Shown piece by piece: positions 6,388-63,926 of a stretch of 64,000 bases of DNA. The position numbers were made by a program, and so were the translations under genes. Source of the stretch: Corallochytrium limacisporum Hawaii (taxonomy: Eukaryota; Protista; Pluriformea); NCBI GenBank assembly GCA_002811645.1, contig PDIP01000093.1:12790-76789 (forward strand), read 5' to 3'. Under the pieces are notes generated by a model. That model was not told where the DNA came from, searched no databases, and saw only the letters and a list, made by a program, of their open reading frames with translations. Each line of letters starts with the position of its first letter. Positions within the stretch are counted from its first letter, which is position 1.

Positions 6388-9300
6388 CTATACGAACGCC
6401 TTCCATCCGTGGAAATGATGGGACAGATTCTTCTCGTCCGTAGCCTGCAGGATCAATCGCTGCACTTGAGCCTCTACGGTGCTGTGAATGCCATCTGCAA
6501 TGCCATTCATCTTTTGCCTAAGTGTATCCAAGATGGAAAAGGCATCGTCACAGGGTTCCTCGCTTGTATCCATTTCGTTCAGGGCGGCATCACCGCGCTG
6601 ACGTCTGCGTCGGTTCTCTACACCCGCTTGCCATTTGTTCAAGGGGTCGTATAGGAACACTTCGATGATGGTTTCCAGCTCAAAATTGTGCATACGGACC
6701 ATCCGCATGACGTTCTCGCACACCGTACGGAACTGTCCTTCGTAACTTGTAGGGCCCATGCCATCAACTAGGTCGCGGGTGAGACGGAATGGGACCCTTT
6801 CCGGTACTGCAAGGAACCGGCCTTGGTCAAAGGCAACTCCGAGATCGATATGCACAACTTCTGCGGTGCTGTCATCAACGAGCAGATTGCCAACATGACG
6901 ATCTCCGAGACCAACGACGTAACCAATTATGCTAGCAGTTGCCATGCTCCGGGTGTAGGAGAGACGCCGACGGTGCCATGCCTGGGCATTTTGCGCCGTC
7001 TCCCTGAAGTAGTACCGGAAGACGGGCTTAAAGTTAGCACAGACCCATCGATAGACGCTCAGGCGCTTCTCTTCTGTTTCGTTCTGCGTTTTCATAATGC
7101 GGTCCCGGGCTTCGTTGGGCTTAATATCTTGTGGACGATACCGTTCGTGGGCTCCGAGCCTTCCACCGCGCCGCCCGCCGAGTAGATAGTCGCTGAGCGT
7201 CCGCGTACCTTCACACCACTCCAAGACGCCAGCGACCTGACTGATGGGCACGATCTTGAAAGTGCGCATGCGTAGGCGCTGCTCATCCGCGTGAGAGACC
7301 CTTGAATGGTTGAAGAGGCTGTTGAAGAGTTCAAAAACTTGCTCCATGACCATGTCTTGACGCAGATCCTCAGTTTTTACTAATTGCGCGTACCTTTTGC
7401 CGTCCGTACCCACCACAGTCACTTTTTTCGGTAAGTTGACGCCCCCGGGGATAAAATACGTCTTGGAGACAGCATGGATGCTGATGACGTCAGTACCGTC
7501 TCGGATGACACCATCTGGTGGCAGAGGAATGTTTCGGGTAATGATCGGATAGGACATGTCGGCATTGATGTCAAGAATGCCCGTCGACTCGGGGATCGAA
7601 TGAGTTCCAGCGTTTTGGGAGCGCCCACCAATACTGGTGAGGCGCAAATATGCATCAAAGAGGCCTTTGTATCGGTTCAGAACTTGTTGTCCCCTGCCAT
7701 TGAGTGTGTTCAGGATGCTGCCTGCCTCAGCTTTTCTCTTACTCTCTATCGAATCTGTCGTGTTGACCATGGCCAAGAGGGTCGGAATGCAGTGGTAAGG
7801 GTATCTCCGGGCACAGCGTTGCAAGAGCTCGCGGAGACCACTGCTCTGAGGCGTGGGTCGTGTGCCAACCTGGTTTATGTAGATGGCCAGCAGCTGGTAA
7901 AATACCCTGATGTATAGAAAGATCGGCACAGAGTGCATCTGGGTCACTGCCTCCTGTTCAATCTTGGCAATGACAGACTGCTTGAAGCCGAGGTCTTTAA
8001 TCGAGTCATCGTTGACCAAGGCGACTAACCGAAACACCTGTAGTCCATGGCCCTCGCTGTACTGTAGACCTTTAGCGTAGTTGGAGATAGAACACAGGAG
8101 ATGCTTTTTGAACTGTTGCAGCACTGCACTTCTACTTTGTGTGTGTACCATATCTTCCATCTTCAGAGTCTTTAGCCGCCTCAACTGGTCTCTTGTTCTC
8201 TTCGTCAATGATTCCAATTTTCGAATTTCAGTCTTCCTGTTTACAGACCGCTTTTCACGATCGTTATACTCTACACCATTGAAATAGTCTCGCAATTGAC
8301 GAAAGCGTTCATCAGCAAACGAAGCTAAGGCGAAGCGTGCGTCAGACTTAACAGCGTAGTCAGCACTAAGTGAATTGGTCTTGTCGTAGCAGCCGATGAC
8401 CAATTCGTCCTGGTTGATAAATTCGTGTGCGTGCCACCGACCGCAGGTTAGGTAAGCCGTAGCTAGTACTTCATCGTACATCTGACCATGGGACTCATTT
8501 AGATGATCAACCGTGTACTGCAGGAGCTTGACCGCACGGGCCCGGTCGTTCAATTCCCACATAAGGCGTGCCTGCAGAAAATTGTGAACCAAGGATGATA
8601 TTGGAGATTTACAGTCCGACCGCTGCACCTGGGCCGCGATATCAGCCGCTACAGTGAGCTGGTTATTAGCAAGCGCTCGCTGTCCGCCGTGAAAAAGATG
8701 CATTGCGCGCAAACGTTGCAATTCAAGAGAGTCTTGCAGCCTCCCCAGGTGAATGGCCGCATCCAGAAGGCGCAAGCGGAAAGTGTGTTGAATCTCCCAG
8801 CGATCGAATTCCAGGGCTAGAGAGTTGTGCTTGGTATCTTCTTCCATCCATGACAACATCGTTCTTTCGATGTCTACTGCGAGCTTTTCGCTTGATGCAC
8901 CTTGGACCAGGTGAGTGGTAAGTTTGGAGACCACTCTTTGTACATCTTCACCCAAGCGTTTCAGCATGAATTCCTCATGTAAAGGGTTTACAGATCCCGT
9001 ACTTGTGTCCAGAGAGCAACTGAGGAAAGAATTGGCTATAGATTCCACTGACTGCCGGTTGTACTTACCTGGAGTAGTATTGAACAAGCAGGTCAGAATG
9101 CTTGCCATCCTTGCGCTCACGTCCTTCCCAAAGCTGATGGGTGCTAACATTCTGTCAATATCGCCATCCTCATGAACCATCGCCCCACTTCCGTGTTGGA
9201 TTCCCCAATCAGACAATCTCCAGGCACAGTCTGCTCGATGCATGGAAAGTTCTGGACCCTCCTGGCGTCCCACCTGACCTATGGCCATTGTCCACTGTCG

Positions 9301-12300
9301 GGAGACTAGGGCGATACGGTTGAAATATTCGTGCACGGGTGGATTCGCTTGAGCCAACGAGACAAATCCACGAGCAATTGTACTTGGGTCACCCCTGAAC
9401 ACTTCGAGTCCATAAAGAGGGTCTGCACATGCCATCAACATTCGACTTGATGACCGTAAATGTTCGTCGTTCAGAGCATTTGCAATGCTATCGATTGTAG
9501 GCAGTAGATCTCGCACACTCGGGTCAAATACAGACGCATTAACCGACTCCAGAAATATTTCGAGCCACATCAGTGCCTCGTAGGGTCGCCCATGCCTTAC
9601 TGACCACTCGGCCAGGACCCTGTAGTCTGTACAACCATGGAAGGAGGCAATCAATTTTTGCCGTTGTTCAGCGGACAAATCACCGGTGCACAATTCATGC
9701 AGATGTTCGTCATATGCGATCTTGAAACCATCGAGTATCGCTGCAACGAAGAGGGTTTCGGCAGTGCTTCGGCTGGGCCCACAAACACGCACTTGCGTTT
9801 GTATGGCACTGATCAGGGTCCGGGCACCACCATCACATTGGCGAATATAGATTGCCAGAGCATGAGGAAGCATTGCTTGCGCAACGGCGGTGTTGGACAC
9901 GTTCATTAGGCGAGTTAAATGGTCGCTACGGCTAAACGCCGCCATCCTCTGAAATAACTCCCTCAATCTCTGTCTGGAAGTTCCTTCCGCATCGCTGCCA
10001 AAGTCAAATATACTGTTATCCAAGATTACAGTAGCAGAATTAGGCAAACTGAGAGGCATGGAAGTGATCATTTGGTGGGTCAAGCCGGGATTTAAACTGG
10101 TGCATAAGATTACCAATCGGTCTTCATAATCCTTCCGCGGATTGAATGAGTCAATATCGCGAGCCCGATAGACGTTGTCGATCAAGTTCACATGCTTCGT
10201 GAACACTTCCAGGAAGATGTGACTGGCCGGGGAATCGGGACACAGACTCTTTATCACTGCATGGCCGGTCTGCACAGCGTACAACGGAATCGTGCAAGCC
10301 TTTCGTCCGATCATTAGGGCTTCAGCCGCTGCTAGGATAGGTTGAGCTGATATGCCAAAGGAACCACTGCACTCAAGAACAACATCGGCAGGTAGGTCGA
10401 GGAGCACGGTGGGTTCACTTAAGGTCTTGATGAATTTCGGTACGAAATCCGTGCGGATTACACCCACCTGGGCCACCCGAGACGCCAGCATCGGGTGTAT
10501 CGATGGATCGACAAGCATTTTGACGGTCCTAAAGACGTTCCACAGGTGATCAAAATACTCCTTCTTACCTGCAGTCTGGTCCAGGAGTCTGATAATCCTT
10601 TCCACTCCCGGCGAAATTTCTCGAGCAAAACTGTCCGCATAGGATTTGGAGCACAGTATGCACAAGGTGTCAATGCACTTGGGGACGATGTTCTCAATGA
10701 ATCTGCCGTCCTTATCATGCATGACTGCCCATTTAACGGCGGCGAGAACTATATCGAGGACTGAATGTGCAAGGCATCGGTGCTCCACGTATGGCAAAGT
10801 CTGATTTACAATCGCAAAAACGGTATCTTTCAGCAGGTGTCGGCCGCCCTTGGTAAGGAGCCATCTACAGAATTCCGAGTACCGGGGAAAGACATCCTTT
10901 TCCACTAGTCTTGGGAGTAACATGCGCAGGCTGCTGATATAACCATTGGTCTGAGACAGCGCTATCACCAACGTGTTCTGGTCTTTGGTCATCCATGCCA
11001 ACAGCTCGTCTTTGATCTCTGCTCGGTCCCGAAATAACTCGAAGTACGCAATCGCACTAGTTGTACAACCCTTGTGTGATTCTGTAAGTGTTCCAGCTAC
11101 GCCGTAAAAAAGCAGATAGGCAGTGTTTTTCTGCCAAAGTTTCTGCAAGACTCTAGGGGTCATGCTGCTACGTCCCTCTGCGGAAACCAAATTGCGTCTT
11201 TGTGTTTCTACTATGGATGTCCGGTTGTCGTCGCTTCCTTTGAGAGTGGCGCCATACAAGGCTTGACGATCTCGGTTCAGTGCCTCAAGGCCTCTAAATT
11301 CAGGATCGAGATAGTTTGCAAGGGTTTCGAGAACGCTTTGGCGATCATCAAAGCTGAATCTACCCACAGCCAAGACACAGTCTAGAATTAGGTGAAGAAT
11401 TTGTTTGCGTACTTCACAGTCGGTCTCTTTGTGTCGCAGGAACTTAACCAACGGCGTTTGCTGCCATCGCACGAGGCTGAGGTTCAGCAAGCGAGTGTCG
11501 TTTTCTTTCAGATCATATGCAAAATTCGAAACCATTACCTTAATCGCTTCCACCAGGTCCATCACAGTCTCCATTTGCTCAAAGTCCAGAACACTTGTTC
11601 CGGAAATCCAATCGCTCATGCAGGTAGGTCGCCTTGCGAAACAGGTGGCCAGCTGACGTGGATTGTCCGGAAGACCTGCATAGGGCAAGAGATCATTCGT
11701 CAGACCTACCAACTTAACCGATAGCCACATGGACTCGCGCACGTCCTGGGGAATGGCCGCGATGGGAAGTTCACGTTGGTGTCGCAGTAAACAGGCGAAG
11801 GCACTGGCCAGACCATCGCGACAAACGTAGCTGTCACAGAGTTCATTGAGTATGTGCAACAGATGGCCTTCGATGTCGAGTCCAGCCGTGTTTCCATTCG
11901 CCAGCGTGATAATGTAAGAAATTGTCTGACAAAAGTCCATGAAGAAGTCCACCGGATAAACCGTTGTGCTGGCCAGGTCCTTCAGAAGAGAGTTGATCTG
12001 AGTGCTCATATTGCTCTTGGTGTTCTCCGCATTTACGCTACCAATGGACACCATCACACTAAACAGACCTCGAACGAGCTCGAGATGTAGTCCAGGATGG
12101 TCACGAAGATGACGATTCCCAAGTGTCCGCATCACGTATGGTCCAAAGTCGAGGCCCTCAAGAGTGGCCTTCATATCAATCCAGCAACATTCGACACTCC
12201 TGCGCAATGAAAAATACGTTCGCCAAAAGTGCACGGGAGGGCGTTCCTTGCTCACGGACTCATATTCATCAAGTGCTCGGCGGAGTGTCAACGAAAATGT

Positions 12301-14697
12301 TTCAAACAATTGTCGATCGATCAGTTCAGTGACCGTTGGAGTGCAGCACAGATGCTTCGTTTGTGTCAAGAGACCTTCGGCCGCCGATGATTCAGATTGC
12401 GCTCCAGAGCACTGAATGCGCCACTCAAAGTTCGGTTTCAGGGCTTGAGACACTTGAGCAAGAAGACATTCCAACAGGCCAAGAATCTCAGTAGTATTCT
12501 TACCGGAAAGGCCTTTCAAGGCTGGAATCAGAAGCTTCCGGAAGCTGTCGTAAAAGTCCTTAGCTTCAGGGACACTGACAGGGCAGCACTTGAGGAGAAT
12601 CGCCATGCGCAAAAACGATCGAACTTTGTCAAGATTTGCTAGGTCTCTAACCTGGTGATGCATTTGCATCAGAGCGCGTTTGACCAAGAGCCAGAATTTC
12701 CGTTGGCGATCGCGGTTGGACATAATGGTTGAGCGGAAAGTGAAGTCCCTTTCCCCAACCCACACCCCACTTTGACTAAAGTTAGACATCATTCTCAACA
12801 TGCTCTGATAAATGTGCATGGAGTGGGAGTCGGCCTTGCCGGACAGACCGGGAACATCAAAGGCGATCGGATCCAGAAGTTCAGCATCAGTTGATGACTG
12901 GAATAGCAGCGGAACCATGTACGCCACGTTCGGCAAATCAGATGCCGGTTTTGAATAGACCAGACTGCGTATTACATTTCCAACGACAGTCTCCCAATCA
13001 CCCCATCGACATGGCTGAGATCTGTGTGCATGCAACCACAATGTAGCAAGCTCATTGTATCGGTCAGAATTCATGGGTGAAGCTAGGGCGGCAAACAATT
13101 TGGTCGAAGCAAGAGTGACTTGTCGATCATATAGGTACGTCACATTGATGTGCAGTACAAGCAGCTCATCATAGTTGTCAAGAGCGACCAGCTCATCGAC
13201 GCATTCATCAGCATAGTTCCGCCACTTCATGTGAGGCCCCGTGTGCACACCGGCATGGAATTGCCATCGAAAGAGCTGATTTGCACATGAAAGCACGGCT
13301 GAGTGCACTCTTGTATTGCTTGATTGCACTGCCAATCTCTTCAGCTTGACCGTCACCAGATTGTACAATTTCTTACAGGGCACGACTGCTCCAATGAAAC
13401 ACCCAACGCGAAGGATGTGATAAATGACACAGCAGTAATTGATCAAGAGGGCATTGCAAATTCTTCGTGCGCGACACACTGGGCTGTCACAGCCTGCGTT
13501 GACCGATGACAAGAGTCGATCAATCTCAGTAGCAAGATCTGTTCTCAAGGCAAGCAACATAACAGCATATGTACAAGCTGCATCGCTATCATCTGCCACT
13601 GATGTCAGTGGTTCTGGATCTGAAACGAATGCAGCCATGTACGCATTGTGATCCCCTCCTGAAGATTTTGTCTTCAGACGATGGGGCTGGCGTAGGGCCA
13701 ACAGTACCTGCTGTTGATACCATACAGTGCTGTTGTGCTCTTCGCCGAAGCATCTGAAGCTTGCAAAGTACCGCAAAAGATCACAAAGACCAGGGACATC
13801 GATCACAGACGTTACCGAACCCGATTCTATTTGTCTTTTGATCTTCTCTCCCAATCCCTCCGATCCATACCAAAGTTCAACTAAACTGACATACTGATCT
13901 AGGCCTCCCAGATAAGCAAAGTCTCGCAAAGCTTCCAAGAGGGCAGAGTTCTTCAAAGTGAAAGTTGGCACAGCGGCCTTCGCGGCAACCAGAAATGGTT
14001 CAGCTGTCCTTGGTCTGCCTTGCAGCTTGTTCCTCAACCCGTTAAACTTCGACATCATGTGTCGAATCGTCATCCATAACGGTCGACAATCATTGCGCTT
14101 GCAAGTTTTTCGGATAATCAGGAGAAGAGTTAACCACAATTTCTTCCAATAACCCGAATGGTCAAGCATTTGGCAATACGCAGGAACCCGGAAGAAAACG
14201 TCGTTGAGTACACAGACGAGTGTCGATACATGTTCTTCGTGCTCCCCAACCTCATCTGCCAGGAAATTAACAATAACATATATGTCCTTTGCCAGTACCG
14301 GGTCCGCGTCACATATGTCAACATTAATTGAATGGCATATATTGAGGATCCGTACGTACAGATCGAAAAGGACTTTCTTCGTCCTCAAGGTAGCACAAAC
14401 GGACGTGTACTCTTCTGTTATGTAACGTAAAACTTCACACCACTCTGTACGTTCCTCTTCCTCGTCCAGCGTCTCTGATAATTCATCGGCATACTGTTCA
14501 CACAGTGCTATGCACTGATCTGCAATGACATCGACTTCTCTGCCAGTTTTTCTCTGCACGATCTGGCTGACCACATTGCGAAACCTTTTAAGAGCAAATG
14601 ATGCGGGCGTAGCAGCCTTTTTAGCAATGGAGAGCCCTGAATCATCTAATGGTCTCTTTAAGCTCTGAGCTGGAGCCATTCTGCGGGATTTCTGCAT
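6388..14697 (-). CDS. ATM: ATM/Tel1 PIKK serine/threonine kinase (single 2769-aa ORF; true start may be Met7 at 14679)
   Basis: Kinase motifs 'GGVNLPK', 'QLVKTEDLRQDMVMEQVF', 'GLGDRHVGNLL', 'HIDLGVAFDQG', 'VPERVPFRLTRD'. FATC 'ATDEKNLSHHFHGWKAFV'. HIDLG and the FATC form are ATM-type. The Met7 ATG has the better Kozak context (AGAATGG). Confidence 0.93.
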   Translation of the reverse strand: MQKSRRMAPAQSLKRPLDDSGLSIAKKAATPASFALKRFRNVVSQIVQRKTGREVDVIADQCIALCEQYADELSETLDEEEERTEWCEVLRYITEEYTSVCATLRTKKVLFDLYVRILNICHSINVDICDADPVLAKDIYVIVNFLADEVGEHEEHVSTLVCVLNDVFFRVPAYCQMLDHSGYWKKLWLTLLLIIRKTCKRNDCRPLWMTIRHMMSKFNGLRNKLQGRPRTAEPFLVAAKAAVPTFTLKNSALLEALRDFAYLGGLDQYVSLVELWYGSEGLGEKIKRQIESGSVTSVIDVPGLCDLLRYFASFRCFGEEHNSTVWYQQQVLLALRQPHRLKTKSSGGDHNAYMAAFVSDPEPLTSVADDSDAACTYAVMLLALRTDLATEIDRLLSSVNAGCDSPVCRARRICNALLINYCCVIYHILRVGCFIGAVVPCKKLYNLVTVKLKRLAVQSSNTRVHSAVLSCANQLFRWQFHAGVHTGPHMKWRNYADECVDELVALDNYDELLVLHINVTYLYDRQVTLASTKLFAALASPMNSDRYNELATLWLHAHRSQPCRWGDWETVVGNVIRSLVYSKPASDLPNVAYMVPLLFQSSTDAELLDPIAFDVPGLSGKADSHSMHIYQSMLRMMSNFSQSGVWVGERDFTFRSTIMSNRDRQRKFWLLVKRALMQMHHQVRDLANLDKVRSFLRMAILLKCCPVSVPEAKDFYDSFRKLLIPALKGLSGKNTTEILGLLECLLAQVSQALKPNFEWRIQCSGAQSESSAAEGLLTQTKHLCCTPTVTELIDRQLFETFSLTLRRALDEYESVSKERPPVHFWRTYFSLRRSVECCWIDMKATLEGLDFGPYVMRTLGNRHLRDHPGLHLELVRGLFSVMVSIGSVNAENTKSNMSTQINSLLKDLASTTVYPVDFFMDFCQTISYIITLANGNTAGLDIEGHLLHILNELCDSYVCRDGLASAFACLLRHQRELPIAAIPQDVRESMWLSVKLVGLTNDLLPYAGLPDNPRQLATCFARRPTCMSDWISGTSVLDFEQMETVMDLVEAIKVMVSNFAYDLKENDTRLLNLSLVRWQQTPLVKFLRHKETDCEVRKQILHLILDCVLAVGRFSFDDRQSVLETLANYLDPEFRGLEALNRDRQALYGATLKGSDDNRTSIVETQRRNLVSAEGRSSMTPRVLQKLWQKNTAYLLFYGVAGTLTESHKGCTTSAIAYFELFRDRAEIKDELLAWMTKDQNTLVIALSQTNGYISSLRMLLPRLVEKDVFPRYSEFCRWLLTKGGRHLLKDTVFAIVNQTLPYVEHRCLAHSVLDIVLAAVKWAVMHDKDGRFIENIVPKCIDTLCILCSKSYADSFAREISPGVERIIRLLDQTAGKKEYFDHLWNVFRTVKMLVDPSIHPMLASRVAQVGVIRTDFVPKFIKTLSEPTVLLDLPADVVLECSGSFGISAQPILAAAEALMIGRKACTIPLYAVQTGHAVIKSLCPDSPASHIFLEVFTKHVNLIDNVYRARDIDSFNPRKDYEDRLVILCTSLNPGLTHQMITSMPLSLPNSATVILDNSIFDFGSDAEGTSRQRLRELFQRMAAFSRSDHLTRLMNVSNTAVAQAMLPHALAIYIRQCDGGARTLISAIQTQVRVCGPSRSTAETLFVAAILDGFKIAYDEHLHELCTGDLSAEQRQKLIASFHGCTDYRVLAEWSVRHGRPYEALMWLEIFLESVNASVFDPSVRDLLPTIDSIANALNDEHLRSSSRMLMACADPLYGLEVFRGDPSTIARGFVSLAQANPPVHEYFNRIALVSRQWTMAIGQVGRQEGPELSMHRADCAWRLSDWGIQHGSGAMVHEDGDIDRMLAPISFGKDVSARMASILTCLFNTTPGKYNRQSVESIANSFLSCSLDTSTGSVNPLHEEFMLKRLGEDVQRVVSKLTTHLVQGASSEKLAVDIERTMLSWMEEDTKHNSLALEFDRWEIQHTFRLRLLDAAIHLGRLQDSLELQRLRAMHLFHGGQRALANNQLTVAADIAAQVQRSDCKSPISSLVHNFLQARLMWELNDRARAVKLLQYTVDHLNESHGQMYDEVLATAYLTCGRWHAHEFINQDELVIGCYDKTNSLSADYAVKSDARFALASFADERFRQLRDYFNGVEYNDREKRSVNRKTEIRKLESLTKRTRDQLRRLKTLKMEDMVHTQSRSAVLQQFKKHLLCSISNYAKGLQYSEGHGLQVFRLVALVNDDSIKDLGFKQSVIAKIEQEAVTQMHSVPIFLYIRVFYQLLAIYINQVGTRPTPQSSGLRELLQRCARRYPYHCIPTLLAMVNTTDSIESKRKAEAGSILNTLNGRGQQVLNRYKGLFDAYLRLTSIGGRSQNAGTHSIPESTGILDINADMSYPIITRNIPLPPDGVIRDGTDVISIHAVSKTYFIPGGVNLPKKVTVVGTDGKRYAQLVKTEDLRQDMVMEQVFELFNSLFNHSRVSHADEQRLRMRTFKIVPISQVAGVLEWCEGTRTLSDYLLGGRRGGRLGAHERYRPQDIKPNEARDRIMKTQNETEEKRLSVYRWVCANFKPVFRYYFRETAQNAQAWHRRRLSYTRSMATASIIGYVVGLGDRHVGNLLVDDSTAEVVHIDLGVAFDQGRFLAVPERVPFRLTRDLVDGMGPTSYEGQFRTVCENVMRMVRMHNFELETIIEVFLYDPLNKWQAGVENRRRRQRGDAALNEMDTSEEPCDDAFSILDTLRQKMNGIADGIHSTVEAQVQRLILQATDEKNLSHHFHGWKAFV

Positions 14698-40065: not shown

Positions 40066-43000
40066 ATGACCGAGGGCAACGGCAGCGTCTGGCGTGGCGA
40101 CAAGCCGTTGACTCCCTCCGCAGACCTCGACAATGACGCGAGTGAACCTATTTACGAAAACAACAGTTTGCGGGATACAATCCGAGCCACACGCATCACA
40201 CCAGATACACCAAAGGTACGGAATATAAGCGACGATATCGATGAAAGCCCGTACGAAAATGTGAGCTCCGTCGGCGGTACCCTGCGCCAGCCATACAAGG
40301 AGACCAACAAGAGCCGCAGATCCACCACGGGATCCACAGACAGCTCGAGCCACACGTTTGTGCCAGCAGAGGTCATGTACACGGCGGGGAGACAAAGGCA
40401 ACCCCTCCCGGAGACACCGGACGATGCCGCGGGTGAGGCAGCACTCAAGGGTTTGGAAAACAAGATCCTCGCACAGTCGAATTCCAGGACAATAGATTCT
40501 CTTGCGTCCTTTGACGACGGATATGTGGAGGCGCTGAGCGCGAACGACATTGTCCGTCCGGCACGGAGTAAGGACTTGTTCCTCAAGGAGGGCGAAGACC
40601 CGATCTATGAGTATATCTCCACGAAGTACGGCGGCGGCCATCGCGCGACACTGCGGATTCTGCAGGACGACCAGGATAGCGAGGATCCGTACTCGAATGC
40701 GTCCAGTGTGGCAGGCACTCTGCGCTCGAATCGGCGGACCAGGAACAATCGCACGCAACGCAGTGATGAGAACAATGGAGGCGACAGCAACAACATCAGC
40801 AACGGCAGTGGCGGCAGCGAGAACGACAAACGCGAAAGTTTGGAAGAAATCCGGTCACCAATGGACAACCTGGCACTGGCTATGAAGAGCGTGTCCAAGG
40901 GCAAGACAGCGCACCGCACGTACAACCCGGAGTTGCCGGAACGTCTGATCAAGGCCTCCAGCCGCAGTCCGGTGCTACCCGAGCGCAACTCTGCGCAGAA
41001 CCGCAGTCTGACGGATCTGATAAGGAGCAACAGCCCTGCGGAGGGTGTGAGTTTCAGCCGCAGGCGGGAGACGGTGAGTCTGCCAAATCAACAGCGCATT
41101 TTGCAGGAGATGGAACCCGTACAGATGCTTTTTAATCGGGAACACAAGCGCTTTGGGACAGATCCGCTCTTCCAGGTGCTCACTTCGGGCAGCAAAGACC
41201 TCTCAGGTAAGGAATACAATGCAGCCAAGATGACTAAGCTGGTGCGTAAGGTTGTGTCCAAGATCCTGGACGCGGGCCGTCCCCAGGAGAACGAATTGAT
41301 TGTGATCCTCCTGGACCGCACAGAGGAGAGTGAAATGCTGTGGATGGCTGCCTTCCTGGCTTGCCAGTACCTCGGCATCACGCCGGTAGTATTCGACACC
41401 CCGGACGAGGTCTGCAGTGTGAAGACGAAGGCTCTGCTGGACCTCCTGACGACGTACAATGTTCGCACCTTTTTGACACAGTCGAGCGTGACCAAGCGGT
41501 ACACGACTCTGCGCGGATCTTCATCGAGTGATATTCGCCGGTCCTCGCAGGACTTTAAGAAGCTGCTGCAAAGTGAGGACCAGGTACTCCTTGATGAGGC
41601 ACGGTATCTCTGGCAGATGATGCTGGCGGGTAAAATGATTCTTTTGGACAATCTGAAAAGCCCATCCAGTCGGTTGCAGGGAATGGTGGACTTTGCTGTG
41701 TTGCAGCCCGTCCGGGACCGGACCTCATTCCTCATGCCCTCAGACGGCGTTGAGTACAAGGGAATGCTACGCCTGGTCAGCTACAGCCGTGGAGCATACA
41801 CGCATTCCAGTTTGACACTGAGCAAGGCTCTGAGGACTGACAACAGCAGTGTCATTATCAACCTCTTGCCCAGCAAGACGCCTGTCGGCTTTTGGATCAA
41901 CATAGGCCTCACACTGGTGGAAGGCAATCGCACATATCCCCTGGGTGAGACTCATCGCAGTGCCGCCGAACTGTTGAATCTGATGACGCAGAGCGGTTGC
42001 ACTCACCTGATCGCTACCCACGAGGCACTCGTGGACATCGCAGTCGGGCTCGGTGACATTAAGCAGAGCAAGCGCAAGTTCAATCTGTCTGCCATTCAGC
42101 AAGTGATCATTCCCGTGGAAGGACGGGTCCGCCGCGGCATGGGTAAACTTTTCATTGATGCCTTGAAGGCCTACGGTCTGTCATCCACCGTCATCTGTCC
42201 GGTCCTTTGTACCGCAGAGTGCGGAATCATTTCCATCGGCACAGTGCCCAACGAAATGAAGCCCATGGCCATCTCCTTGCACAGTCTGCAGGAGGGTGTC
42301 GTGCGCCTCATCGAGGATAACAGCAACACCCCGCGCGGCAACGGAGAGGAAGTTACCACTCTGTTTGACTGCGGTGAGATTGCGCCAGGTGTGTCAATTA
42401 CCGTCGTGGATGGGGATGACCAACAGCCGCTGCCAGAAGGTCGGTGCGGTGTGGTATGCGTGCGAACTTTGGGCAGTGGCCAGGCATACCATTTACAAGA
42501 GATTGAGAGCCAACGCTTCTTTAAGCGCCGGTTGTTCAACGAAAATGCAATGGACACGGGCAGCACCCTGGGATCCAGCCCGAGACGCACCGGCCTCGGA
42601 GCCACAGCCACACACCGCCAGACCTCGACGTCGTCCATCGGTTTGGGGCACCTCACGAAAGCACCGCTGTACAATGTGAGCAATTTAGAAGGCTTTGTGT
42701 GGAACCAACGCCTCTACGTTGTGGGCAGGAAGCAACACGCGTTCACGCTCGAGCGTCGGAGGCACTACAATGAGGACATTTTGGACGCAATCAACCAGTT
42801 GGTCGACTCTGTGCGTATGTGCGCGGACAACAAAGTCATTACTTTTGCTGTCAAGCTTCACGGCCTTCGCCAACCCTGTCTCCTGGCTGAGACTCCGACT
42901 GATGCGGAGAACGACGAAGTCGCTCGGTGGATGTGGCGCGTTGTACAGACTATCTCACAGCGGAATCGCCTAACTCTGCTGCTGGCCGCTACCTGCCCGC

Positions 43001-45723
43001 CCGGTGCGCTGTACATGCGCCCTGATGGTCAACCTGCGCTGCAGCGGAACGGGATGCGCGTTATGGCGGGTGCCATCCCTATGACCTCGCTGTACATTAA
43101 CGACGATAATCCATTCCTGTACGCCATGGCTCGCGTCAGTGGCGTCGCCAGCGACTCCAGTTCGACCGCCATTGAAGCCACGGCCATGGGTGACGATGAC
43201 GACGACGACCCCTTGCACAGCTTTACCGGAGGTTCTGATGTCGTGGACCTGAACTCTTCGGTTATCGACGACCCTGATTCACCTATCACCCGCCGTAGCC
43301 GTGCCATCCGCAACAAGGCTGGCATGGGCGAAGGCTTAGCCGCACCCGCTGTCCTTGGCAAGCCGATCGGCAGCTCAGAGACTATGCGCTCCCTGCGGGG
43401 CCGCGATTCCCTGCGCGAAATCACAAACACTGCGCAGATATTGCTGGAATGGAACATTAACGTGCCGAAGCACACCGGCCTGATTGTTTGTACCGGCAAG
43501 CAGGGCCAGAAGGTGAAGAAATACTCATACAAGGTCATCCATGAGATTGCCATGGAATACGCCCTGACCCTGCAGAAGCAAGGCATCGGTCCCGGCGATC
43601 GGGTCATTGTGGCGCACCGTCCGGGCATTGATCAGTATGGCGCTTTCTACGGATGCTTCTACGTCGGCGCGGTGCCGACTCTGGTGAATCCGCCGGAAAT
43701 TGTCGACCTGCCGTCGGCGGCCACGAATAAGTCCAAGAGCCACAGCGATGCCACGCGCGCCGCCGTTTCCAGCTGGCGCCTGTTCTGGGCCATGCTTCTA
43801 GCCATCAACTACAAGAGGACCGCTGGACTGCCCGTTGTCTGTGAGACGGACGTAGCCAAGACAGCGAAAAGCACGCGCATGAGCCGCGTCTTTCCGGAGA
43901 TTGCGGACCGCTTCACCATGATTGTCAAGCAAAGCTTTACTGGTGGCATGCTGAGTTCCAACAAGATCAAAGACGTGAAGTACCTGCCGTACATTGAGCG
44001 TGGTAAGCGATCAACGTCACTGATTGACCTGAGCGCGAGCGCCAACGGAGTCCTGGTCGGTGCGCAATACAGTCACGACCAAGTCCTGCGTGCCATCCGT
44101 ACCATCGGTGATCAATGGAAGTGGAGCCAGCAGCAACATGTGGAAGGGTCGGACTACGATCGCAAGCCTATGATGGTGTGCGCTAACACATGCAACGGCT
44201 TTGGACGTATGTTGCCCATGCTCGTGAACATGTACTACGGCCGGACGACCATTATCATTGATCCCGCGCAGCAGATAACCTACCCGGACACGATCTTTGC
44301 CGTCGCGGATAAATTCCGTCCCGTGGTTGGTCTGATCAACACGTCGGTCCTCGACATTGCTGGACGGTACTGCCTCTGGCGCTCCAATCGCGACCACTAC
44401 CACTCCAATGGCGGTCTCGCGACCGGCTCACGGACGTCCATGGGATCTGTCGGTATGGAGTCCGGTAGCACTGCTGCTATGTCCATGTACGACGAGTATG
44501 GCGCCATGATCAAGCGAAGCCCGGCCTCTGCAGCTGTCAGTCGGGAGAATTTCGGCTCAAACGGTTCAATCTCCACGTCAGTTGGCGGTCGCGAAGTCTT
44601 TGACCTAAGTTTCCTCGAGACTCTGCTGGTGGAAAGCCGCACACGTCCTGAGGTAGAGATTGTCAGTCGCTTTGAAATGAGCGCCAATCTGACGCCTGGA
44701 ACTGTGCGCTTTGTCTTCAGTTGCCCAGAAGCCCCTAGTGCTGTGGTGCCGCAGCTCATTCGAGAGTTCGACAGCACCGCTGCATCGAACGGCGTCGCGG
44801 TGGGACCCATGGGTGCTGTTCTTGTCTCCCGCACGGCGCTGGAAGCAGGTAAAGTGCGCATTATGAGCGATGCGTCCGTCGCAGACGTCGACCAGAGCCC
44901 TGCGAGTCATACCCTCGACGGGACACTGCTAGTGCCCTGTGGCTCGCTGCTGCCAGGTACGGCGGCGGCAGTCGTTGACCCCGCCACCCAGCGGCTCTGT
45001 CTGCGTAACGAAATTGGCGAGCTGTGGATCAGTGCTCCGGGCAATGCACATCTGTATGCATCGATGACCGACAGTTCACAGGCCAATCTAGATGGCAACG
45101 GCAGTCTGTCAGGCGGGGGTAGCGCCAGCCACCGCACCATGACTGACCAAGACACCAAGTCGCTTGGATCCGCATTGACCACAGCCACGGAGGCCGCTGC
45201 TTTCAATTCAGAGGGCCTGGACTGTCGTTTGGGTTCGGACGGCCGTACTTACGTGCGGACCGGAACTCTGGGTTACGTGAACCAACGTCAGGGCAGCCCA
45301 GATCTCTACGTCTGCGGGAATTTCGAAGATTCGGTGGTGATTGAGGAAAGATGCCATTACTTCGCTGACATTGAACAGTCCATTGCAGACTCGTGCCCAA
45401 GCCGTCTGTTCTACGCCGGAGTATTGGTATTTAGCGTGAAGAATCAGCTTGTCGCCTTGATGGAGAGTCCAATCTCACCGGACCACTGCCTGGAGCTTGT
45501 GGTGCCTGTCTTCTTGCGCGTTTTGGAGCGGCACAACATTGCACTATCTGTGCTCTGCTTTGTGCCCCGCAAGACCATCTCGGCCACCGTCTACGGTGAG
45601 AAGCAGCGCGCCCGTAGTCAGCTTCAGTTCCTCAGGCAGCAACTCAGTATCAACTTTATGTTTGTGTTGGGATCCAGCAATGCGGTTGAGGAGGCGCAGT
45701 CAACATTTGCGTCGCCTCGCTGA
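40066..45723 (+). CDS. DIP2: DIP2/Cmr2-like protein with tandem fatty acyl-AMP ligase-like domains
   Basis: 1885 aa with two degenerate adenylate-forming domains ('AAFLACQYLGITPV...RRHYNEDI' and 'GDRVIV..PGID..AFYGCFYVGAVP...VVDPATQRLC..EIGELWI...YVRTGTLGYV...DIEQSI'). Ends with 'TVYGEKQR', as in DIP2 (GEKQR). Confidence 0.85.
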   Translation: MTEGNGSVWRGDKPLTPSADLDNDASEPIYENNSLRDTIRATRITPDTPKVRNISDDIDESPYENVSSVGGTLRQPYKETNKSRRSTTGSTDSSSHTFVPAEVMYTAGRQRQPLPETPDDAAGEAALKGLENKILAQSNSRTIDSLASFDDGYVEALSANDIVRPARSKDLFLKEGEDPIYEYISTKYGGGHRATLRILQDDQDSEDPYSNASSVAGTLRSNRRTRNNRTQRSDENNGGDSNNISNGSGGSENDKRESLEEIRSPMDNLALAMKSVSKGKTAHRTYNPELPERLIKASSRSPVLPERNSAQNRSLTDLIRSNSPAEGVSFSRRRETVSLPNQQRILQEMEPVQMLFNREHKRFGTDPLFQVLTSGSKDLSGKEYNAAKMTKLVRKVVSKILDAGRPQENELIVILLDRTEESEMLWMAAFLACQYLGITPVVFDTPDEVCSVKTKALLDLLTTYNVRTFLTQSSVTKRYTTLRGSSSSDIRRSSQDFKKLLQSEDQVLLDEARYLWQMMLAGKMILLDNLKSPSSRLQGMVDFAVLQPVRDRTSFLMPSDGVEYKGMLRLVSYSRGAYTHSSLTLSKALRTDNSSVIINLLPSKTPVGFWINIGLTLVEGNRTYPLGETHRSAAELLNLMTQSGCTHLIATHEALVDIAVGLGDIKQSKRKFNLSAIQQVIIPVEGRVRRGMGKLFIDALKAYGLSSTVICPVLCTAECGIISIGTVPNEMKPMAISLHSLQEGVVRLIEDNSNTPRGNGEEVTTLFDCGEIAPGVSITVVDGDDQQPLPEGRCGVVCVRTLGSGQAYHLQEIESQRFFKRRLFNENAMDTGSTLGSSPRRTGLGATATHRQTSTSSIGLGHLTKAPLYNVSNLEGFVWNQRLYVVGRKQHAFTLERRRHYNEDILDAINQLVDSVRMCADNKVITFAVKLHGLRQPCLLAETPTDAENDEVARWMWRVVQTISQRNRLTLLLAATCPPGALYMRPDGQPALQRNGMRVMAGAIPMTSLYINDDNPFLYAMARVSGVASDSSSTAIEATAMGDDDDDDPLHSFTGGSDVVDLNSSVIDDPDSPITRRSRAIRNKAGMGEGLAAPAVLGKPIGSSETMRSLRGRDSLREITNTAQILLEWNINVPKHTGLIVCTGKQGQKVKKYSYKVIHEIAMEYALTLQKQGIGPGDRVIVAHRPGIDQYGAFYGCFYVGAVPTLVNPPEIVDLPSAATNKSKSHSDATRAAVSSWRLFWAMLLAINYKRTAGLPVVCETDVAKTAKSTRMSRVFPEIADRFTMIVKQSFTGGMLSSNKIKDVKYLPYIERGKRSTSLIDLSASANGVLVGAQYSHDQVLRAIRTIGDQWKWSQQQHVEGSDYDRKPMMVCANTCNGFGRMLPMLVNMYYGRTTIIIDPAQQITYPDTIFAVADKFRPVVGLINTSVLDIAGRYCLWRSNRDHYHSNGGLATGSRTSMGSVGMESGSTAAMSMYDEYGAMIKRSPASAAVSRENFGSNGSISTSVGGREVFDLSFLETLLVESRTRPEVEIVSRFEMSANLTPGTVRFVFSCPEAPSAVVPQLIREFDSTAASNGVAVGPMGAVLVSRTALEAGKVRIMSDASVADVDQSPASHTLDGTLLVPCGSLLPGTAAAVVDPATQRLCLRNEIGELWISAPGNAHLYASMTDSSQANLDGNGSLSGGGSASHRTMTDQDTKSLGSALTTATEAAAFNSEGLDCRLGSDGRTYVRTGTLGYVNQRQGSPDLYVCGNFEDSVVIEERCHYFADIEQSIADSCPSRLFYAGVLVFSVKNQLVALMESPISPDHCLELVVPVFLRVLERHNIALSVLCFVPRKTISATVYGEKQRARSQLQFLRQQLSINFMFVLGSSNAVEEAQSTFASPR

Positions 45724-50966: not shown

Positions 50967-53417
50967 TCAGACAAATTGACTGCGACCACCACCACTGCGA
51001 CGGCCTCGCTGTTGTCCCGGTTGTGTTGATGTGCGGCTGTCCCGCGAGTGCTGTGGCTCGGGCACAGCAAACTGCTGCTGCTGCTGCTGCTGCTGTTGCT
51101 GCTGGGGATGAGGTGGTGGCAAGTCAGATGGCCTCGGCTTGGTGCGCAGCTGGCCGTAGATACGACGCTTCTCGTTCTCGGACAGCTTCTTACGACGGTA
51201 GGTGCATTTCAAAGCCACGACCAGCAGGATAATTCCCACAGCAATGATCAGAACAATCCACCAATTGGCCTTGAGCCAGTCACCAACGGCAGACAGACCA
51301 TCGCTGCTAAAGATAGAGCCGAGCTTATTGAGCGGTGTCTCATTGTCGACCTGAATGCACTGGCCCGAGTCATCGCAGTAGCCGGTCTGGTCACCACATG
51401 AGCGACCTGCTGGCAGGTTCACGCCAACCACGGTCTCATTGTTGCGGGTGGCGCCTTGCGATTCGAGAACAAACGTGGAGACGCAGTTGTTATCATTGTC
51501 GGTGCAGCAGACATCACACTCCTGGCCGTTAGTATCGCACGAGCAGGCTGTCAGACCGTATTTCGTACAGATGGAAACTGTGCAACTGCCACTTTCACAC
51601 AGGAAGGCTCCACCGTCACACTCTGTGCCGTCTGCCTTGGGAGTGGCGGTCGGGCAGTCACCTGCGGTACCGGAGCAGGTCGCAGACACGCTGCAGTCCG
51701 TCTCCGGCGAGCACGTCTCTCCAGAAGTCTTGAATTGGCACTGATTCTGGGTATTAAGGGCCTCGCAGCAGACGTCTGCAATCGGCGAGCACTCGTACTC
51801 GGCTCTGATGGTGCAGTTAGTATGGCAGCAAGGGTCCACCTCCATGCAGGCGGTGTTATCGGTGGTAGTGCCACAGTCACAGTCCTCACCTGTCTCGACG
51901 ATGCCGTTGCCACAGACGGCCTCTGGCGGTTCGATGAAGCAGGCACTGCTCTTGGACTCAATCACAGACCACATGGTGGTAATTGAGCACGGGGAGAACT
52001 TGTTATTGTTGGGCAGGTCACCATCGGTGGCCTTGTCGTGCATAATGTAGTTGCCAGAGCCATCAGAAGGAGTACAGTCCGGGCCGTTCGGGTTGTCGAC
52101 CGGGTCGTGACGGGCACCAAAATTGTGGCCCAATTCGTGGCTAAGAGTGATGATGGATACCATTTCGGGAACACGAGAGTTCGAAATTCGGGCAGAAGTC
52201 AGACCAGTGTTCAGATTCTTTTCTCCTTGGCTCGTGTTCACACGGCGCTGACAGATGCCACCGGCATTGCCACCAGGATCAGCGTCAGCGACCCAGGCGA
52301 GACCAAGAACCACGCCATTAAAGTTGCGGTAGGTAAATAGATGGGCGAGGCAAGTGTCATCAAAATTTTCGGACGAGAAGGTGGACAAAAGGTTGTTGAC
52401 ATCAGAGCACACGGCGCAGTTGGCATCGCTGTAGGGATCCTCGGCAGAGTTGCGGAAAATCTCTATGGACTTGATGCTGAAACCGATGTCAAGGTCAGTG
52501 TTAGCGTCGCTGTCAAAGTTGGTGCTCTTGTAGATGGTGTTGGCACCGTTGAACCAGCGGGTGACGGTGTTAACGGTGGTTGCAAAATTGCCTTCACCAA
52601 CGTTCTCGAAGAACAGAGAGTCTGCCTTGAGGACAAGCTGGCAAGTGTTCAGGTTAGCGACAAATTGACGTCGCTGGCGGCGCCCGGTGGCAGCTTCCCT
52701 CCGTTCCTGTACACCAAGGTCTGTGGTCTCCCGGTTATCCTTGGCCTTCTTATTCTCATCCTCCACCAATCCGAAAATTTCCAAAGGACGAGTGTCGTCA
52801 CTATCGACGTGGCCACAGGTGCGTCCACTGCGCAAATCCTCGGAGACATCCGCGTAAGAGAAGGACACATGGCTCGCCACAGTGTCGTCTTTGTGCCAGT
52901 GAGCCGGTTCTAGGGAGATGCGCTGACCGTCGTCGAGCCAGAGCTCGGCAACCAAGTGCCCGTCGATAAATGACCCAGTACACGACCCTACATCCTCAAA
53001 GGCCTCGTCGTATACCTGACCCGAGTAGTGCACATTAATATCCACATGTTCATCGCTCTTGACCTTGTTGCCGTCTTCGTCTAGAACTAGAATCTCGAAC
53101 CCGGGGCTGAACAAGTGATGCTCTGGGTGTAGAGCAACTGTGTATGTGTCGGAGCCATGAGTCACCTGAAAGGTAATTGGGGCATACCACTGTTCAGGAG
53201 TCTGGAGATCCTGGCGCAGCTTCAAATGGTCGGCAAAAAGACCCTGTGTGTCCAGGTCTAGCTCCATATGTGCAAGGACATGCTCATTCAGTGCCGGCGC
53301 ACCCATTGACTGCAGAGGAGTCACTTTCTGTTCGCTGTGTGTGTGTTCATGTGCTGATGCGCCCAAAGCCACCAGGGCCAGGGCTCCGATAGACGAAAGC
53401 AGCTTTTGCAGCTGCAT
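50967..53417 (-). CDS. ADAM10/ADAM17 (Kuzbanian/TACE)-like membrane metalloprotease
   Basis: Signal peptide; prodomain with Cys switch 'RTCGH'; furin site 'RRQRR'; 'CLAHLFTYRNF..VVLGLAWVA'; zinc motif 'HELGHNFGARHD'; Met-turn 'GNYIM'; disintegrin 'CGNGIVETGEDCDCG'; TM 'WWIVLIIAVGIILLVVAL'; polyQ tail. Confidence 0.92.
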   Translation of the reverse strand: MQLQKLLSSIGALALVALGASAHEHTHSEQKVTPLQSMGAPALNEHVLAHMELDLDTQGLFADHLKLRQDLQTPEQWYAPITFQVTHGSDTYTVALHPEHHLFSPGFEILVLDEDGNKVKSDEHVDINVHYSGQVYDEAFEDVGSCTGSFIDGHLVAELWLDDGQRISLEPAHWHKDDTVASHVSFSYADVSEDLRSGRTCGHVDSDDTRPLEIFGLVEDENKKAKDNRETTDLGVQERREAATGRRQRRQFVANLNTCQLVLKADSLFFENVGEGNFATTVNTVTRWFNGANTIYKSTNFDSDANTDLDIGFSIKSIEIFRNSAEDPYSDANCAVCSDVNNLLSTFSSENFDDTCLAHLFTYRNFNGVVLGLAWVADADPGGNAGGICQRRVNTSQGEKNLNTGLTSARISNSRVPEMVSIITLSHELGHNFGARHDPVDNPNGPDCTPSDGSGNYIMHDKATDGDLPNNNKFSPCSITTMWSVIESKSSACFIEPPEAVCGNGIVETGEDCDCGTTTDNTACMEVDPCCHTNCTIRAEYECSPIADVCCEALNTQNQCQFKTSGETCSPETDCSVSATCSGTAGDCPTATPKADGTECDGGAFLCESGSCTVSICTKYGLTACSCDTNGQECDVCCTDNDNNCVSTFVLESQGATRNNETVVGVNLPAGRSCGDQTGYCDDSGQCIQVDNETPLNKLGSIFSSDGLSAVGDWLKANWWIVLIIAVGIILLVVALKCTYRRKKLSENEKRRIYGQLRTKPRPSDLPPPHPQQQQQQQQQQQFAVPEPQHSRDSRTSTQPGQQRGRRSGGGRSQFV
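51072..51103 (-). repeat. (CAG)n repeat encoding polyQ in the ADAM cytoplasmic tail
   Basis: ctgctgctg... on the plus strand; Q11 in the protein. Confidence 0.9.
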
Positions 53418-61194: not shown

Positions 61195-61468
61195 GGGGGG
61201 GTGTTGTGAGGTCAAGGTGTGGCGCTGACCGGTCTCTGTTTGAAGCTCATTCGGACGGTTCTCCAGTTGGATGAGCTTGTGGTCGTACACAATAGGTATC
61301 TCACACACCATAGGCTGTTTAATCATTATGTGCAATGAACGAAATGCTGTGTGAAGGAGATCAAAGGACAAGCTGAAAGCAACACAGTAGAACTCAGGGA
61401 AAGGCTTAGAAATGTGAATGCTTCGGTTACATACCGGTCAAACAGTTCGATAGAATAGATTGTCCACC

Positions 61469-61870
61469 ATGATATACAGCGTGTATATCATTAACAAGGC
61501 TGGTAGCTTGATCTTCCAACAGGACTACATTGAAGGATACCGTCTTCCTGCCAATGAGCGAATCATGCTTGCCAGTACGTTCCACTCATTGTTTGCGATT
61601 GCCGCCAACATTTCTCCGGCCAATAATTCCTCCGGGATCAAGACATTGGACTGCGACTCCTTCAGGCTAGAATGCATGCAGACTGCAACGGGGACTAAAT
61701 TCATGTTGTTAGCGGACCCGTTAGAGGAAGGTCTTCCCCACTTCCTGCAGAAGGTATATGAACTTTATGCTGATCACGTGCTGAAGAATCCCTTCTATTC
61801 CCTTGAGATGCCCATCCGAATCCAGAGCTTTGAGAGCAATCTGCGGGAGCTATTGACATCTAAAACGTAA
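61469..61870 (+). CDS. TRAPPC4: TRAPP complex subunit TRAPPC4/Trs23 (short form, longin domain only)
   Basis: 'MIYSVYIINKAGSLIF', 'NERIMLASTFHSLFAI', 'SSGI', 'QTATGTKF', 'YELYADHVLKNPFYSLEMPIR'. ATG in CCACCATG context at 61469. Confidence 0.95.
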   Translation: MIYSVYIINKAGSLIFQQDYIEGYRLPANERIMLASTFHSLFAIAANISPANNSSGIKTLDCDSFRLECMQTATGTKFMLLADPLEEGLPHFLQKVYELYADHVLKNPFYSLEMPIRIQSFESNLRELLTSKT

Positions 61871-61941
61871 ATTGAGCGCATGCAAATAATGTTCATAAAA
61901 GCCATTTCCCAACAAATCATGAATCAAGAAGCCTATTTGTT

Positions 61942-62919
61942 TTATTCTCTGCCCATCCGGGCTACTTCCTGCACAGCAATATCAGATCCAGGGAAGACCT
62001 GTTCAACGTCTGCGACCATGAGGATTGGCAAAAACTCGTCATCATACACGGTACGGATCTTGGTTTTTTCAGGCAGAGGGATCTGCTGGGGTCGTACGTA
62101 GTCCCCGATACTCTTGCTGTCATCAACCGGTTGTTCACGCCTTTCGAGCTTAATGCCCCCGCTCGGTTCCAAGTTGTTCGGGGGTAGCTTCAAAACCGTC
62201 CGTTGCGTACTAATCTGTTTCATAGCCGTAAACGGAACAGACGCTTGCACGGTCGCTGTCGCTCCCATTTCCTTCAAGCGGCGACGTTCCCGGAGCTCCT
62301 CAACATAGAGCCGCTTGCGCTCGAGGGCAGCCTCTCGCTTCTCTTTAACCATGGCGTCGTGGTCCCCCTTGCCACGAGCGGCACTGTTGGCAGCAGTCTC
62401 CTTGTGACGCTGGTATTCCATAAGGCCTGCTGCCTGGGCAAAAGATTGATACTCAATGCTCTGAACGGGCACAAAATTCCTGGCCGGCCGATACGGGTTA
62501 TGATAGACTTCTGCTGGGTCTTTTGTGAGGATGTAAGGCTCCAGAGGGGCCGGTGCCAAGGGATCCATGTGTGAATCGCGCTGTTTGTGCAACTGATCGA
62601 AAAGTAAAAGGTGACTGAAAATGTGTGCTCTCCCATCACTGTATTCTTTTGACGTCCAGATCGCATCTAAGTCACGCGCATTGGGGTCGTTGGCAATGAT
62701 AAGGTCCGCATCCTTCCACTTATTCGTGATTCCGATTCTTGATGTGTAGTATGCTTGCCATTCACTGACCCACTTCTCATTAACGTCGGTAGCCACCCAC
62801 AAAAAGACTTTCGAGCGTCCTTTCCTAGACTTGCATGGCAAAGGATACGCTCCTTGATCCCGACTTACACTCGTTTGACTGAGACGCGAATATGAGGCGT
62901 CAGTTGTCGAACCCGCCAT
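61942..62919 (-). CDS. TERB2-like protein (putative meiotic telomere-bouquet protein; BRCT-like N-terminal domain)
   Basis: 325-aa ORF. aa ~38-131 'FLWVATDVNEKWVSEWQA...ITNKWKDADLIIANDPNARDLDAIWTSKEYSDGRAHIF...LEPYIL' aligns by eye with the recalled human TERB2 N-terminus. C-terminal 'EQVFPGSD' resembles TERB2 'DFIPGTSG'. Confidence 0.6.
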   Translation of the reverse strand: MAGSTTDASYSRLSQTSVSRDQGAYPLPCKSRKGRSKVFLWVATDVNEKWVSEWQAYYTSRIGITNKWKDADLIIANDPNARDLDAIWTSKEYSDGRAHIFSHLLLFDQLHKQRDSHMDPLAPAPLEPYILTKDPAEVYHNPYRPARNFVPVQSIEYQSFAQAAGLMEYQRHKETAANSAARGKGDHDAMVKEKREAALERKRLYVEELRERRRLKEMGATATVQASVPFTAMKQISTQRTVLKLPPNNLEPSGGIKLERREQPVDDSKSIGDYVRPQQIPLPEKTKIRTVYDDEFLPILMVADVEQVFPGSDIAVQEVARMGRE

Positions 62920-63926
62920 AATTATATTTCACTAATGAAGCACGAAAATTTGAATATTGATAAATGCTGTGTGTTTTATGTCCTGTCTTCTGTTACGAAA
63001 CCATAATCTTGACCCGTCTTTGCAATCTGTAGTCACTACGTCTCCGTCTTCTTCGACCCGAAATACGCACTACAGTGTAGGAGAACTTGGTGCACTTAAA
63101 TAAGAATTACACGCATCATCGTATAGACCAACTCAAAAATTCAACACCACAGACGGTTTCGCAGCAATGCATGCCTCTATCCCGCTATCCAATCCGTTCT
63201 TGCCCCAAATGAAGTCATGCCAGTGAAACTAAGGAACCCAAAACCCGCCCAGCCGCCTTCCCCATTGACCAGCATACCTTGCGCTCCACCAAGCGGCTCG
63301 GGTGCGATGAGAGAGAGCGCGCCAAAAAAAAAAAAAAAAACTACAGACAAAAATCTGCTTCGGAGACGGTTTGTAAGGTGCTATTTTATATACGGACATT
63401 TTTAGTTTCATAAACTTCAAACTCACAGGGACGGTTTTTCCGTTTCTCTGGAGGATTCGCAGAACGTGTTCGGAACCGATTCGGACGACAAGCAGAGTCC
63501 GATTTGAGTATTGGATTTGTACTGTGGAAAAGGGGCCGCAGCGCCCAGGCCGGAGAATGTGTATCCTGGACGATTGCGGACAATATGTAAAATTCTGGCT
63601 CCCCGCACCGTTCGTGGCCGGCGGGTCTCACAGAAATTGCAGTTCACTTTGCGTCGGGTGGCAGCCCCCGGTCTCTCGGGGCATTCCCGCCGAAGCCTGA
63701 CACGACCGGCTGGCCCGTTGCTTTGGCTGGTAGTTTCGCATGCATCTCTTGTTTCCTCTGGGATCAAGAGACTCATTAAGCTATCTGTGGACACGCAGAG
63801 GATAGAACGGTGAGTGATATAAGGTTCCCTGCAAGCAGTGCAAGCAGGATTCAGCTAGGAGATCAAGATCAAGTCTCACGTCAGAGGAGAGGAATCCCCG
63901 GGACCTTGGGAGAACATGATTTTCTC

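Follow-up and report, generated by a model that had tools for sequence, protein, structure and literature searches.

A TERB2-like gene with a predicted BRCT-fold domain in the unicellular holozoan Corallochytrium limacisporum

Introduction

Meiotic telomeres of animals are tethered by TERB1, TERB2 and MAJIN, three proteins that have been listed only from metazoans and whose origin has been dated to the animal ancestor (PMC7227075), a distribution that later reviews repeat. According to reviews, the meiotic telomere adaptors are not conserved between animals and fungi (PMC10679444, PMC9140367), and Bqt1-Bqt2 of fission yeast, Ndj1 of budding yeast and MJL-1 of C. elegans are reported to share no sequence relationship with the mouse proteins (PMC7227075). 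Two properties of animal TERB2 are useful for comparison. With the substitution Y56E, TERB1 is no longer bound in cells (PMC6361898), and a [F/Y]xLxP motif (human residues 86-90) is present in all metazoan TERB2 proteins (PMC7227075).

An earlier note, made from the DNA letters alone, had proposed a TERB2-like gene in an apparently non-animal genome. Here, we describe this gene of Corallochytrium limacisporum, whose 325-aa product is probably a strongly diverged TERB2 homologue. When the literature outside subscription journals and database annotations was searched with the TERB names and holozoan terms, no non-animal member was found to have been reported, and the Corallochytrium gene is thus the probable first TERB2 homologue outside animals in the literature searched.

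The locus and its host

The window, meaning the whole stretch of DNA that was analysed, is 64,000 nucleotides long and belongs to a genome that was searched in full (24,109,830 bases in 286 contigs). The published genome of Corallochytrium limacisporum measures 24.1 Mb, its coding sequence has 0.0 introns per kb, and the organism is treated as a unicellular holozoan (PMC5560861). EukProt names of proteins encoded on three further contigs start with Clim_evm, and the plasmids of Corallochytrium likewise bear the prefix Clim. NCBI taxonomy places it in Opisthokonta and outside Metazoa, which bears out the non-animal host that the note had proposed; the scaffold is not metazoan. The NCA2 gene and the cyclase domain that it had read among the surrounding genes are both confirmed by Pfam. 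The features of the locus are as follows.

61942..62919, minus strand: TERB2-like gene, 325 aa (open reading frame, exact EukProt protein, RNA-type contigs without joints)
62518..62811, minus strand: N-terminal TERB2-like domain with a modelled BRCT fold, aa 37-134 (PF15101 at aa 41-134, model, 6J07_A as best match, Atlas TERB2 cluster; aligned to human TERB2 4-92)
62617..62646, minus strand: putative TERB1-contact segment, aa 92-101 (alignment to human residues named in PMC6361898 and PMC8956405)
62521..62535, minus strand: Y129-I-L131-T-K133 in the place of the metazoan [F/Y]xLxP motif, without the proline (residue comparison)
62260..62364, minus strand: charged linker segment, aa 186-220, 57% K/R/D/E, probably helical (composition; aa 140-270 are without a Pfam match)
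61975..62046, minus strand: candidate MAJIN-binding motif in a hydrophobic C-terminal segment, aa 292-315 (Y292-P310 spacing equal to human Y176-P194; shuffle P 0.89; without a Pfam match)
61355..63040, no strand: contig-covered stretch with the TERB2-like gene and TRAPPC4 (one contig per RNA-type run)
61469..61870, plus strand: TRAPPC4/sybindin, 133 aa, convergent neighbour (Pfam, EukProt; stop codons 71 nt apart)

Translation of the open reading frame from 62919 to 61942 on the minus strand gives the 325 aa without introns; the note had read this frame as complete. The gene is present in a single copy in the genome, and a EukProt gene model is identical to the protein, its cluster having no other member. 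Two runs that were judged to be RNA, from two studies, each yielded one contig over 61355-63040. These contigs show no splice joints and span both the TERB2-like gene and the convergent TRAPPC4 gene, while the flanking intergenic DNA is uncovered; they record transcription in two samples, which were ordinary culture runs. No functional link between the two genes is implied by their adjacency. Compared with the window, a second strain carries six SNPs in the reading frame, four of which are synonymous and the other two conservative (A181S and D95E), a pattern that points weakly to purifying selection (P 0.038 on the assumption that one change in four is silent).

Elsewhere in the window, genes for an ADAM10/17-like metalloprotease (50967-53417, minus strand), a DIP2-like protein (40066-45723, plus strand) and a 2769-aa PIKK kinase (6388-14697, minus strand) are likewise intronless. 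In one run (X4), a single base is deleted at ~60590, about the start of a SWIB/BAF60 gene.

Sequence evidence for TERB2 identity

The TERB2 family PF15101 is the only Pfam match of the protein among 24,736 models and aligns aa 41-134 to profile positions 7-90. The full protein scores 21.6 bits (E 2.4e-4) and aa 36-140 alone 23.6 bits (E 5.7e-5), both below the curated gathering cut-off of 27 bits, and neither aa 140-270 nor the C-terminal segment has a Pfam match. The profile comparison that the note had called for thus names TERB2 for the N-terminal domain, at a sub-threshold score, and has nothing to say for the tail. In the six-frame translated genome, this reading frame is the only TERB2 match, and the likeness of the N-terminal domain exceeds chance. 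The residues from which the likeness had first been read are all in place, namely W41, D45-V46, W54, A71-D72-L-I-I, D78, D83, I87-W88, S90, E92-Y93, A98, I100-F101 and Y129-I-L131.

Seventeen BRCT domains cut from the same genome served as a control for generic BRCT matching. All 17 match PF00533 and none matches TERB2 at E<=10. Conversely, the query is not matched by any BRCT Pfam family found in these domains, scores -1.8 bits against a local profile built from the 17, and is without the canonical BRCT Gly-Gly turn and alpha-3 Trp. At the level of profiles, the concern that the likeness might be a generic BRCT match was thus not borne out.

Single sequences reach less far. Pairwise and one-sequence-profile searches of the PDB gave no human TERB2 match at E<=10, and no homologue was found by a phmmer scan of 1.84 billion representative proteins, by word-index searches that included other unicellular holozoans, or by a metagenome protein scan, a metagenome motif scan and an exact contig look-up. 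One protein from the phmmer scan (P0002) is a leucine-rich-repeat protein that matches the charged segment, and it was rejected as a homologue. Since the single-sequence searches found no relative, the link to TERB2 rests on the family profile.

In language-model features (ESM Atlas), TERB2 clusters rank second and third once BRCT families are skipped (0.79 and 0.77), with BRCT and unnamed fungal clusters above them. The nearest feature neighbours are two clusters, one unnamed and of 98 aa (0.91), the other of 260 aa and labelled BRCT but without Pfam families (0.81), both of them basidiomycete where the phylum is known. These clusters may be fungal relatives of the TERB2-like domain.

Fold of the N-terminal domain

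An AlphaFold model from the single sequence had a pLDDT of 38, and its fold-search matches were discarded as meaningless noise. A second model of aa 37-134 was folded with an alignment of ten generic BRCT domains from the same genome, a subset picked because their secondary-structure elements aligned in order, and reached a pLDDT of 68. As the guiding alignment held generic BRCTs only, this model was pushed towards BRCT and not towards TERB2. Human TERB2 (6J07_A) nevertheless came out on top in Foldseek (E 0.015, probability 1.0, TM 0.59), a tool that also uses residues and is thus not independent of Pfam, and in VIA (Z 9.2, rmsd 2.4, 88 residues aligned to human 4-92, 18% identity), where ordinary BRCTs follow at Z 8.7-8.8, a margin of less than 1 Z that lies in the tie range of the tool. 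In the Atlas comparison, the TERB2 cluster came first with a TM of 0.68, equal to that of a BRCT cluster. The fold search suggested by the note therefore puts TERB2 at the head of all three lists and in a tie with ordinary BRCTs; the modelled fold is consistent with TERB2 and no proof of it.

The TERB2 N-terminal domain and the BRCT domains of XRCC1, TopBP1 and LIG4 fit this one model equally well, which shows that the N-terminal domain of TERB2 is itself a BRCT fold. A literature search, which covered papers and not structure databases, found none mentioning both TERB2 and BRCT.

Contact residues and C-terminal tail

Residues were compared only at human positions named in papers. No gap is needed to align the TERB1-contact block (D55/E92, Y56/Y93, E58/D95, D59/G96 and F64/F101). 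The equivalents of Tyr56 and F64 are kept (Y93 and F101), and in the acidic cluster E92 and D95 match while G96 does not; the D95E change makes this position Glu in the second strain, as in human E58. This register is the best ungapped one in the protein and fits the spans of the Pfam and structural alignments, its P taken alone being 0.185. Further towards the N-terminus, human W8 corresponds to W41. At the [F/Y]xLxP position the proline (P90) is absent, human G84 is replaced by E127, and an equivalent of G25 is not evident. As both the Pfam cut-off and the motif proline are missed, we file the protein as a TERB2-like variant and not as a confirmed member of the family.

The overall layout consists of the N-terminal domain, a linker and a hydrophobic tail, with no membrane helix. 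In the best register of the MAJIN-binding motif (Y176, D191, F192, P194, Y199), which falls on aa 292-315, Y176/Y292 and P194/P310 are identical, and D191, F192 and Y199 are replaced by Q, V and A. The E-Q-V-F-P-G-S-D stretch that had been likened to the MAJIN-binding region of TERB2 is indeed found at aa 306-313, but the likeness is not above chance: when eight TERB2 residues named in the literature are scored, shuffled sequences equal the tail register 89% of the time (P 0.89), and a claim of MAJIN binding is thus only positional.

Partners and telomere proteins

A genome search with the MAJIN family PF15077, run without a positive-control match, gave no candidate, though the same search gave the 22-bit TERB2 match, and a MAJIN motif pattern matched the genome at control or chance level. 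No candidate TERB1 layout was present among 28 Myb matches in the genome, and four zinc-motif patterns, part of whose matches were read and with several ARM proteins of 700-800 aa left aside, gave only chance matches for TERB1. Among the positions used in the search patterns were C614 of TERB1, the Pro and Trp around F73/Y75 of MAJIN and a choice of N-domain positions. ARM proteins of a size suited to TERB1 occur at C257:213633-213998 (721 aa), C110:222124 (807 aa) and C257:254259 (697 aa). The matches rejected as TERB1 are one lying 3' of a chaperonin gene and carrying an in-frame stop (C253), one in a 69-aa frame upstream of another gene (C256), two that by eye are antisense of other genes (C143 and C255), and an ARM protein (C18) that is unlike TERB1 in the part read. 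Genome searches for a TRFH domain and for Speedy found none. The partner searches are insensitive, that for TERB1 being made without a profile, and the blanks for TERB1, MAJIN, TRFH and Speedy show the absence of none of them. For the TERB1-TERB2-MAJIN system that the note had envisaged, profile and fold thus speak for a TERB2-like N-terminal domain; neither partner was found by these searches, and the tail motif is not significant.

The genome encodes a SUN protein whose SUN domain lies at the C-terminus. A 552-aa protein with an internal Myb domain (G000:C99, Clim_evm20s99) has TRF1 and TRF2 as its best PDB matches and is, judging from its sequence, a candidate double-strand binder at telomeres whose layout is non-animal. 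There is also a POT1 match in an 889-aa frame (G000:C175:124168), and a weak match to the Rap1 C-terminus (E 0.28) lies in a 628-aa frame (G000:C235:76022).

Meiotic gene set

Genes of meiotic type in the genome include a DMC1-like gene, a HORMAD/HOP1-like gene, MND1, two Spo11/Top6A genes and two kleisins. The cryptic meiosis that the earlier note had suggested is thereby given a plausible context, as DMC1-, HOP1-, MND1-, SPO11-like and SUN genes were all found. The DMC1-like gene (G000:C261:51401-52126) has DMC1 as its best matches with a small margin over RAD51, and its open frame is without the N-terminal part. In the HORMAD/HOP1-like protein (G000:C186:231544), a cysteine-rich, PHD-like region follows the HORMA domain. 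The two Spo11/Top6A-family genes (G000:C25:74135-74977 and G000:C70:30881-31354) differ in character: the conserved one is nearer archaeal topoisomerase VI A than yeast Spo11, and the very divergent one, a 291-aa open frame with a separate upstream frame, is the likelier meiotic Spo11. One kleisin of the RAD21/REC8 type lies in the window (3411-5036, minus strand), and a second, more divergent one is found at G000:C171:52022. The life-cycle paper of Corallochytrium makes no mention of sex or meiosis. As a set of predicted genes, this toolkit supports cryptic sex whether or not the gene described here is TERB2.

Possible origin and function

The preferred explanation is that Corallochytrium limacisporum has retained a strongly diverged TERB2 homologue that goes back to a holozoan ancestor. 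Most likely, such a protein would be a two-ended adaptor, like animal TERB2. Its BRCT-derived N-terminal domain would bind a helical telomere-side partner (TERB1 or an equivalent) via the Y93 surface, the flexible charged linker would join this domain to the tail, and at the inner nuclear membrane the hydrophobic C-terminal peptide would bind another partner, either MAJIN or a protein equivalent to it. The adaptor could thereby connect telomere proteins, such as the telobox Myb protein and POT1, with the SUN protein in a meiosis that has so far gone unobserved. Homology to TERB2 is the firmer part of this proposal. A role as meiotic telomere tether is put forward tentatively, at slightly under even chances, and the complete reading of a homologue from the holozoan ancestor acting as telomere-SUN adaptor is an equally tentative one. 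A more far-reaching version, in which the ancestor of Holozoa already had the animal-type TERB1-TERB2-MAJIN tether, assembled around a co-opted BRCT domain, and a highly diverged form of it persists in Corallochytrium meiosis, with TERB1 and MAJIN in the genome beyond the reach of profiles, strikes us as doubtful.

Somewhat unlikely, though the closest competitor, is a true TERB2 homologue without the animal complex, having other partners or a non-meiotic role such as anchoring telomeres or the nuclear envelope in vegetative nuclei. TERB2 would then have arisen from a BRCT protein before animals, with TERB1 and MAJIN either lost in the Corallochytrium lineage or added on the animal stem. The contrast between good evidence for the N-terminal domain and the blank for both partners fits this explanation, as does the first-look search that detected TERB2 and no MAJIN; so do transcription in culture and a life-cycle paper without a sexual stage. 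The kept TERB1-contact tyrosine with its acidic neighbours argues the other way, as does the co-occurrence of the three genes in animals (PMC7227075), and the limited reach of the partner searches, in which TERB1 had no profile and the ARM proteins of 700-800 aa were set aside, lessens the weight of the blanks.

Less probable still is a lineage-specific, degenerate single-BRCT protein, acting for instance in DNA repair, in chromatin or as a Rap1-like adaptor, whose likeness to TERB2 would come from both being degenerate BRCTs. Such a protein would account for the BRCT fold, the structural tie with ordinary BRCTs, the sub-threshold Pfam score and the unnamed basidiomycete and BRCT clusters at the top of the language-model neighbours. 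It would leave unexplained why no real BRCT domain of the genome scores against TERB2 and the query against none of their families, and convergence does not easily yield an E-value of 6e-5 among 24,736 models for a family that had been named beforehand. It is very improbable that the gene is a contaminant or was acquired from an animal by an old transfer: a homologue was found in no other unicellular holozoan and GC3 is 0.56 against 0.61-0.68 in the neighbours, but a raw-data DNA contig joins the gene to TRAPPC4, the two RNA-type runs from two studies and the strain SNPs exclude recent contamination, and the protein is too divergent for any pairwise animal match, which leaves an ancient transfer as only unlikely.

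If the homology holds, at least one subunit of TERB1-TERB2-MAJIN would be moved back before the origin of animals, and TERB2 would gain a route of origin as a BRCT derivative. The TERB2-like protein could also mark a sexual stage of Corallochytrium. Stable transfection of this organism exists (10.1101/2020.11.12.379420), which makes the location and the partners of the protein directly testable.

Comparison with known systems

The proposed role, a meiotic adaptor between chromosome ends and SUN, is shared with Bqt1-Bqt2, Ndj1 and MJL-1 (PMC9140367), whereas the Corallochytrium protein has no sequence or fold match to any of them. Canonical BRCT domains (XRCC1, Rad4/TopBP1, LIG4, Fcp1) have the same fold and the same order of elements as the model (Z 8.3-8.8). 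Unlike them, the domain has no BRCT Pfam match and neither the Gly-Gly turn nor the alpha-3 Trp, stands as a solitary domain, and carries an extra short helix at aa 91-94 in the model.

The TERB1, TERB2 and MAJIN genes of animals are germ-line specific, in contrast to the Corallochytrium gene, which is transcribed in ordinary culture. The protein further differs from animal TERB2 in its length of 325 aa, its 36-aa N-terminal extension, its charged linker segment, an identity of ~18%, the absence of G84 and P90, its non-animal host and the partners not found. Like animal TERB2 (PF15101; PDB 6J07 chain A and 6J08), it is a single-copy protein without a membrane helix whose alpha/beta N-terminal domain superposes, as modelled, on human residues 4-92, with equivalents of W8, Y56 and F64 followed by a linker and a hydrophobic C-terminal tail.
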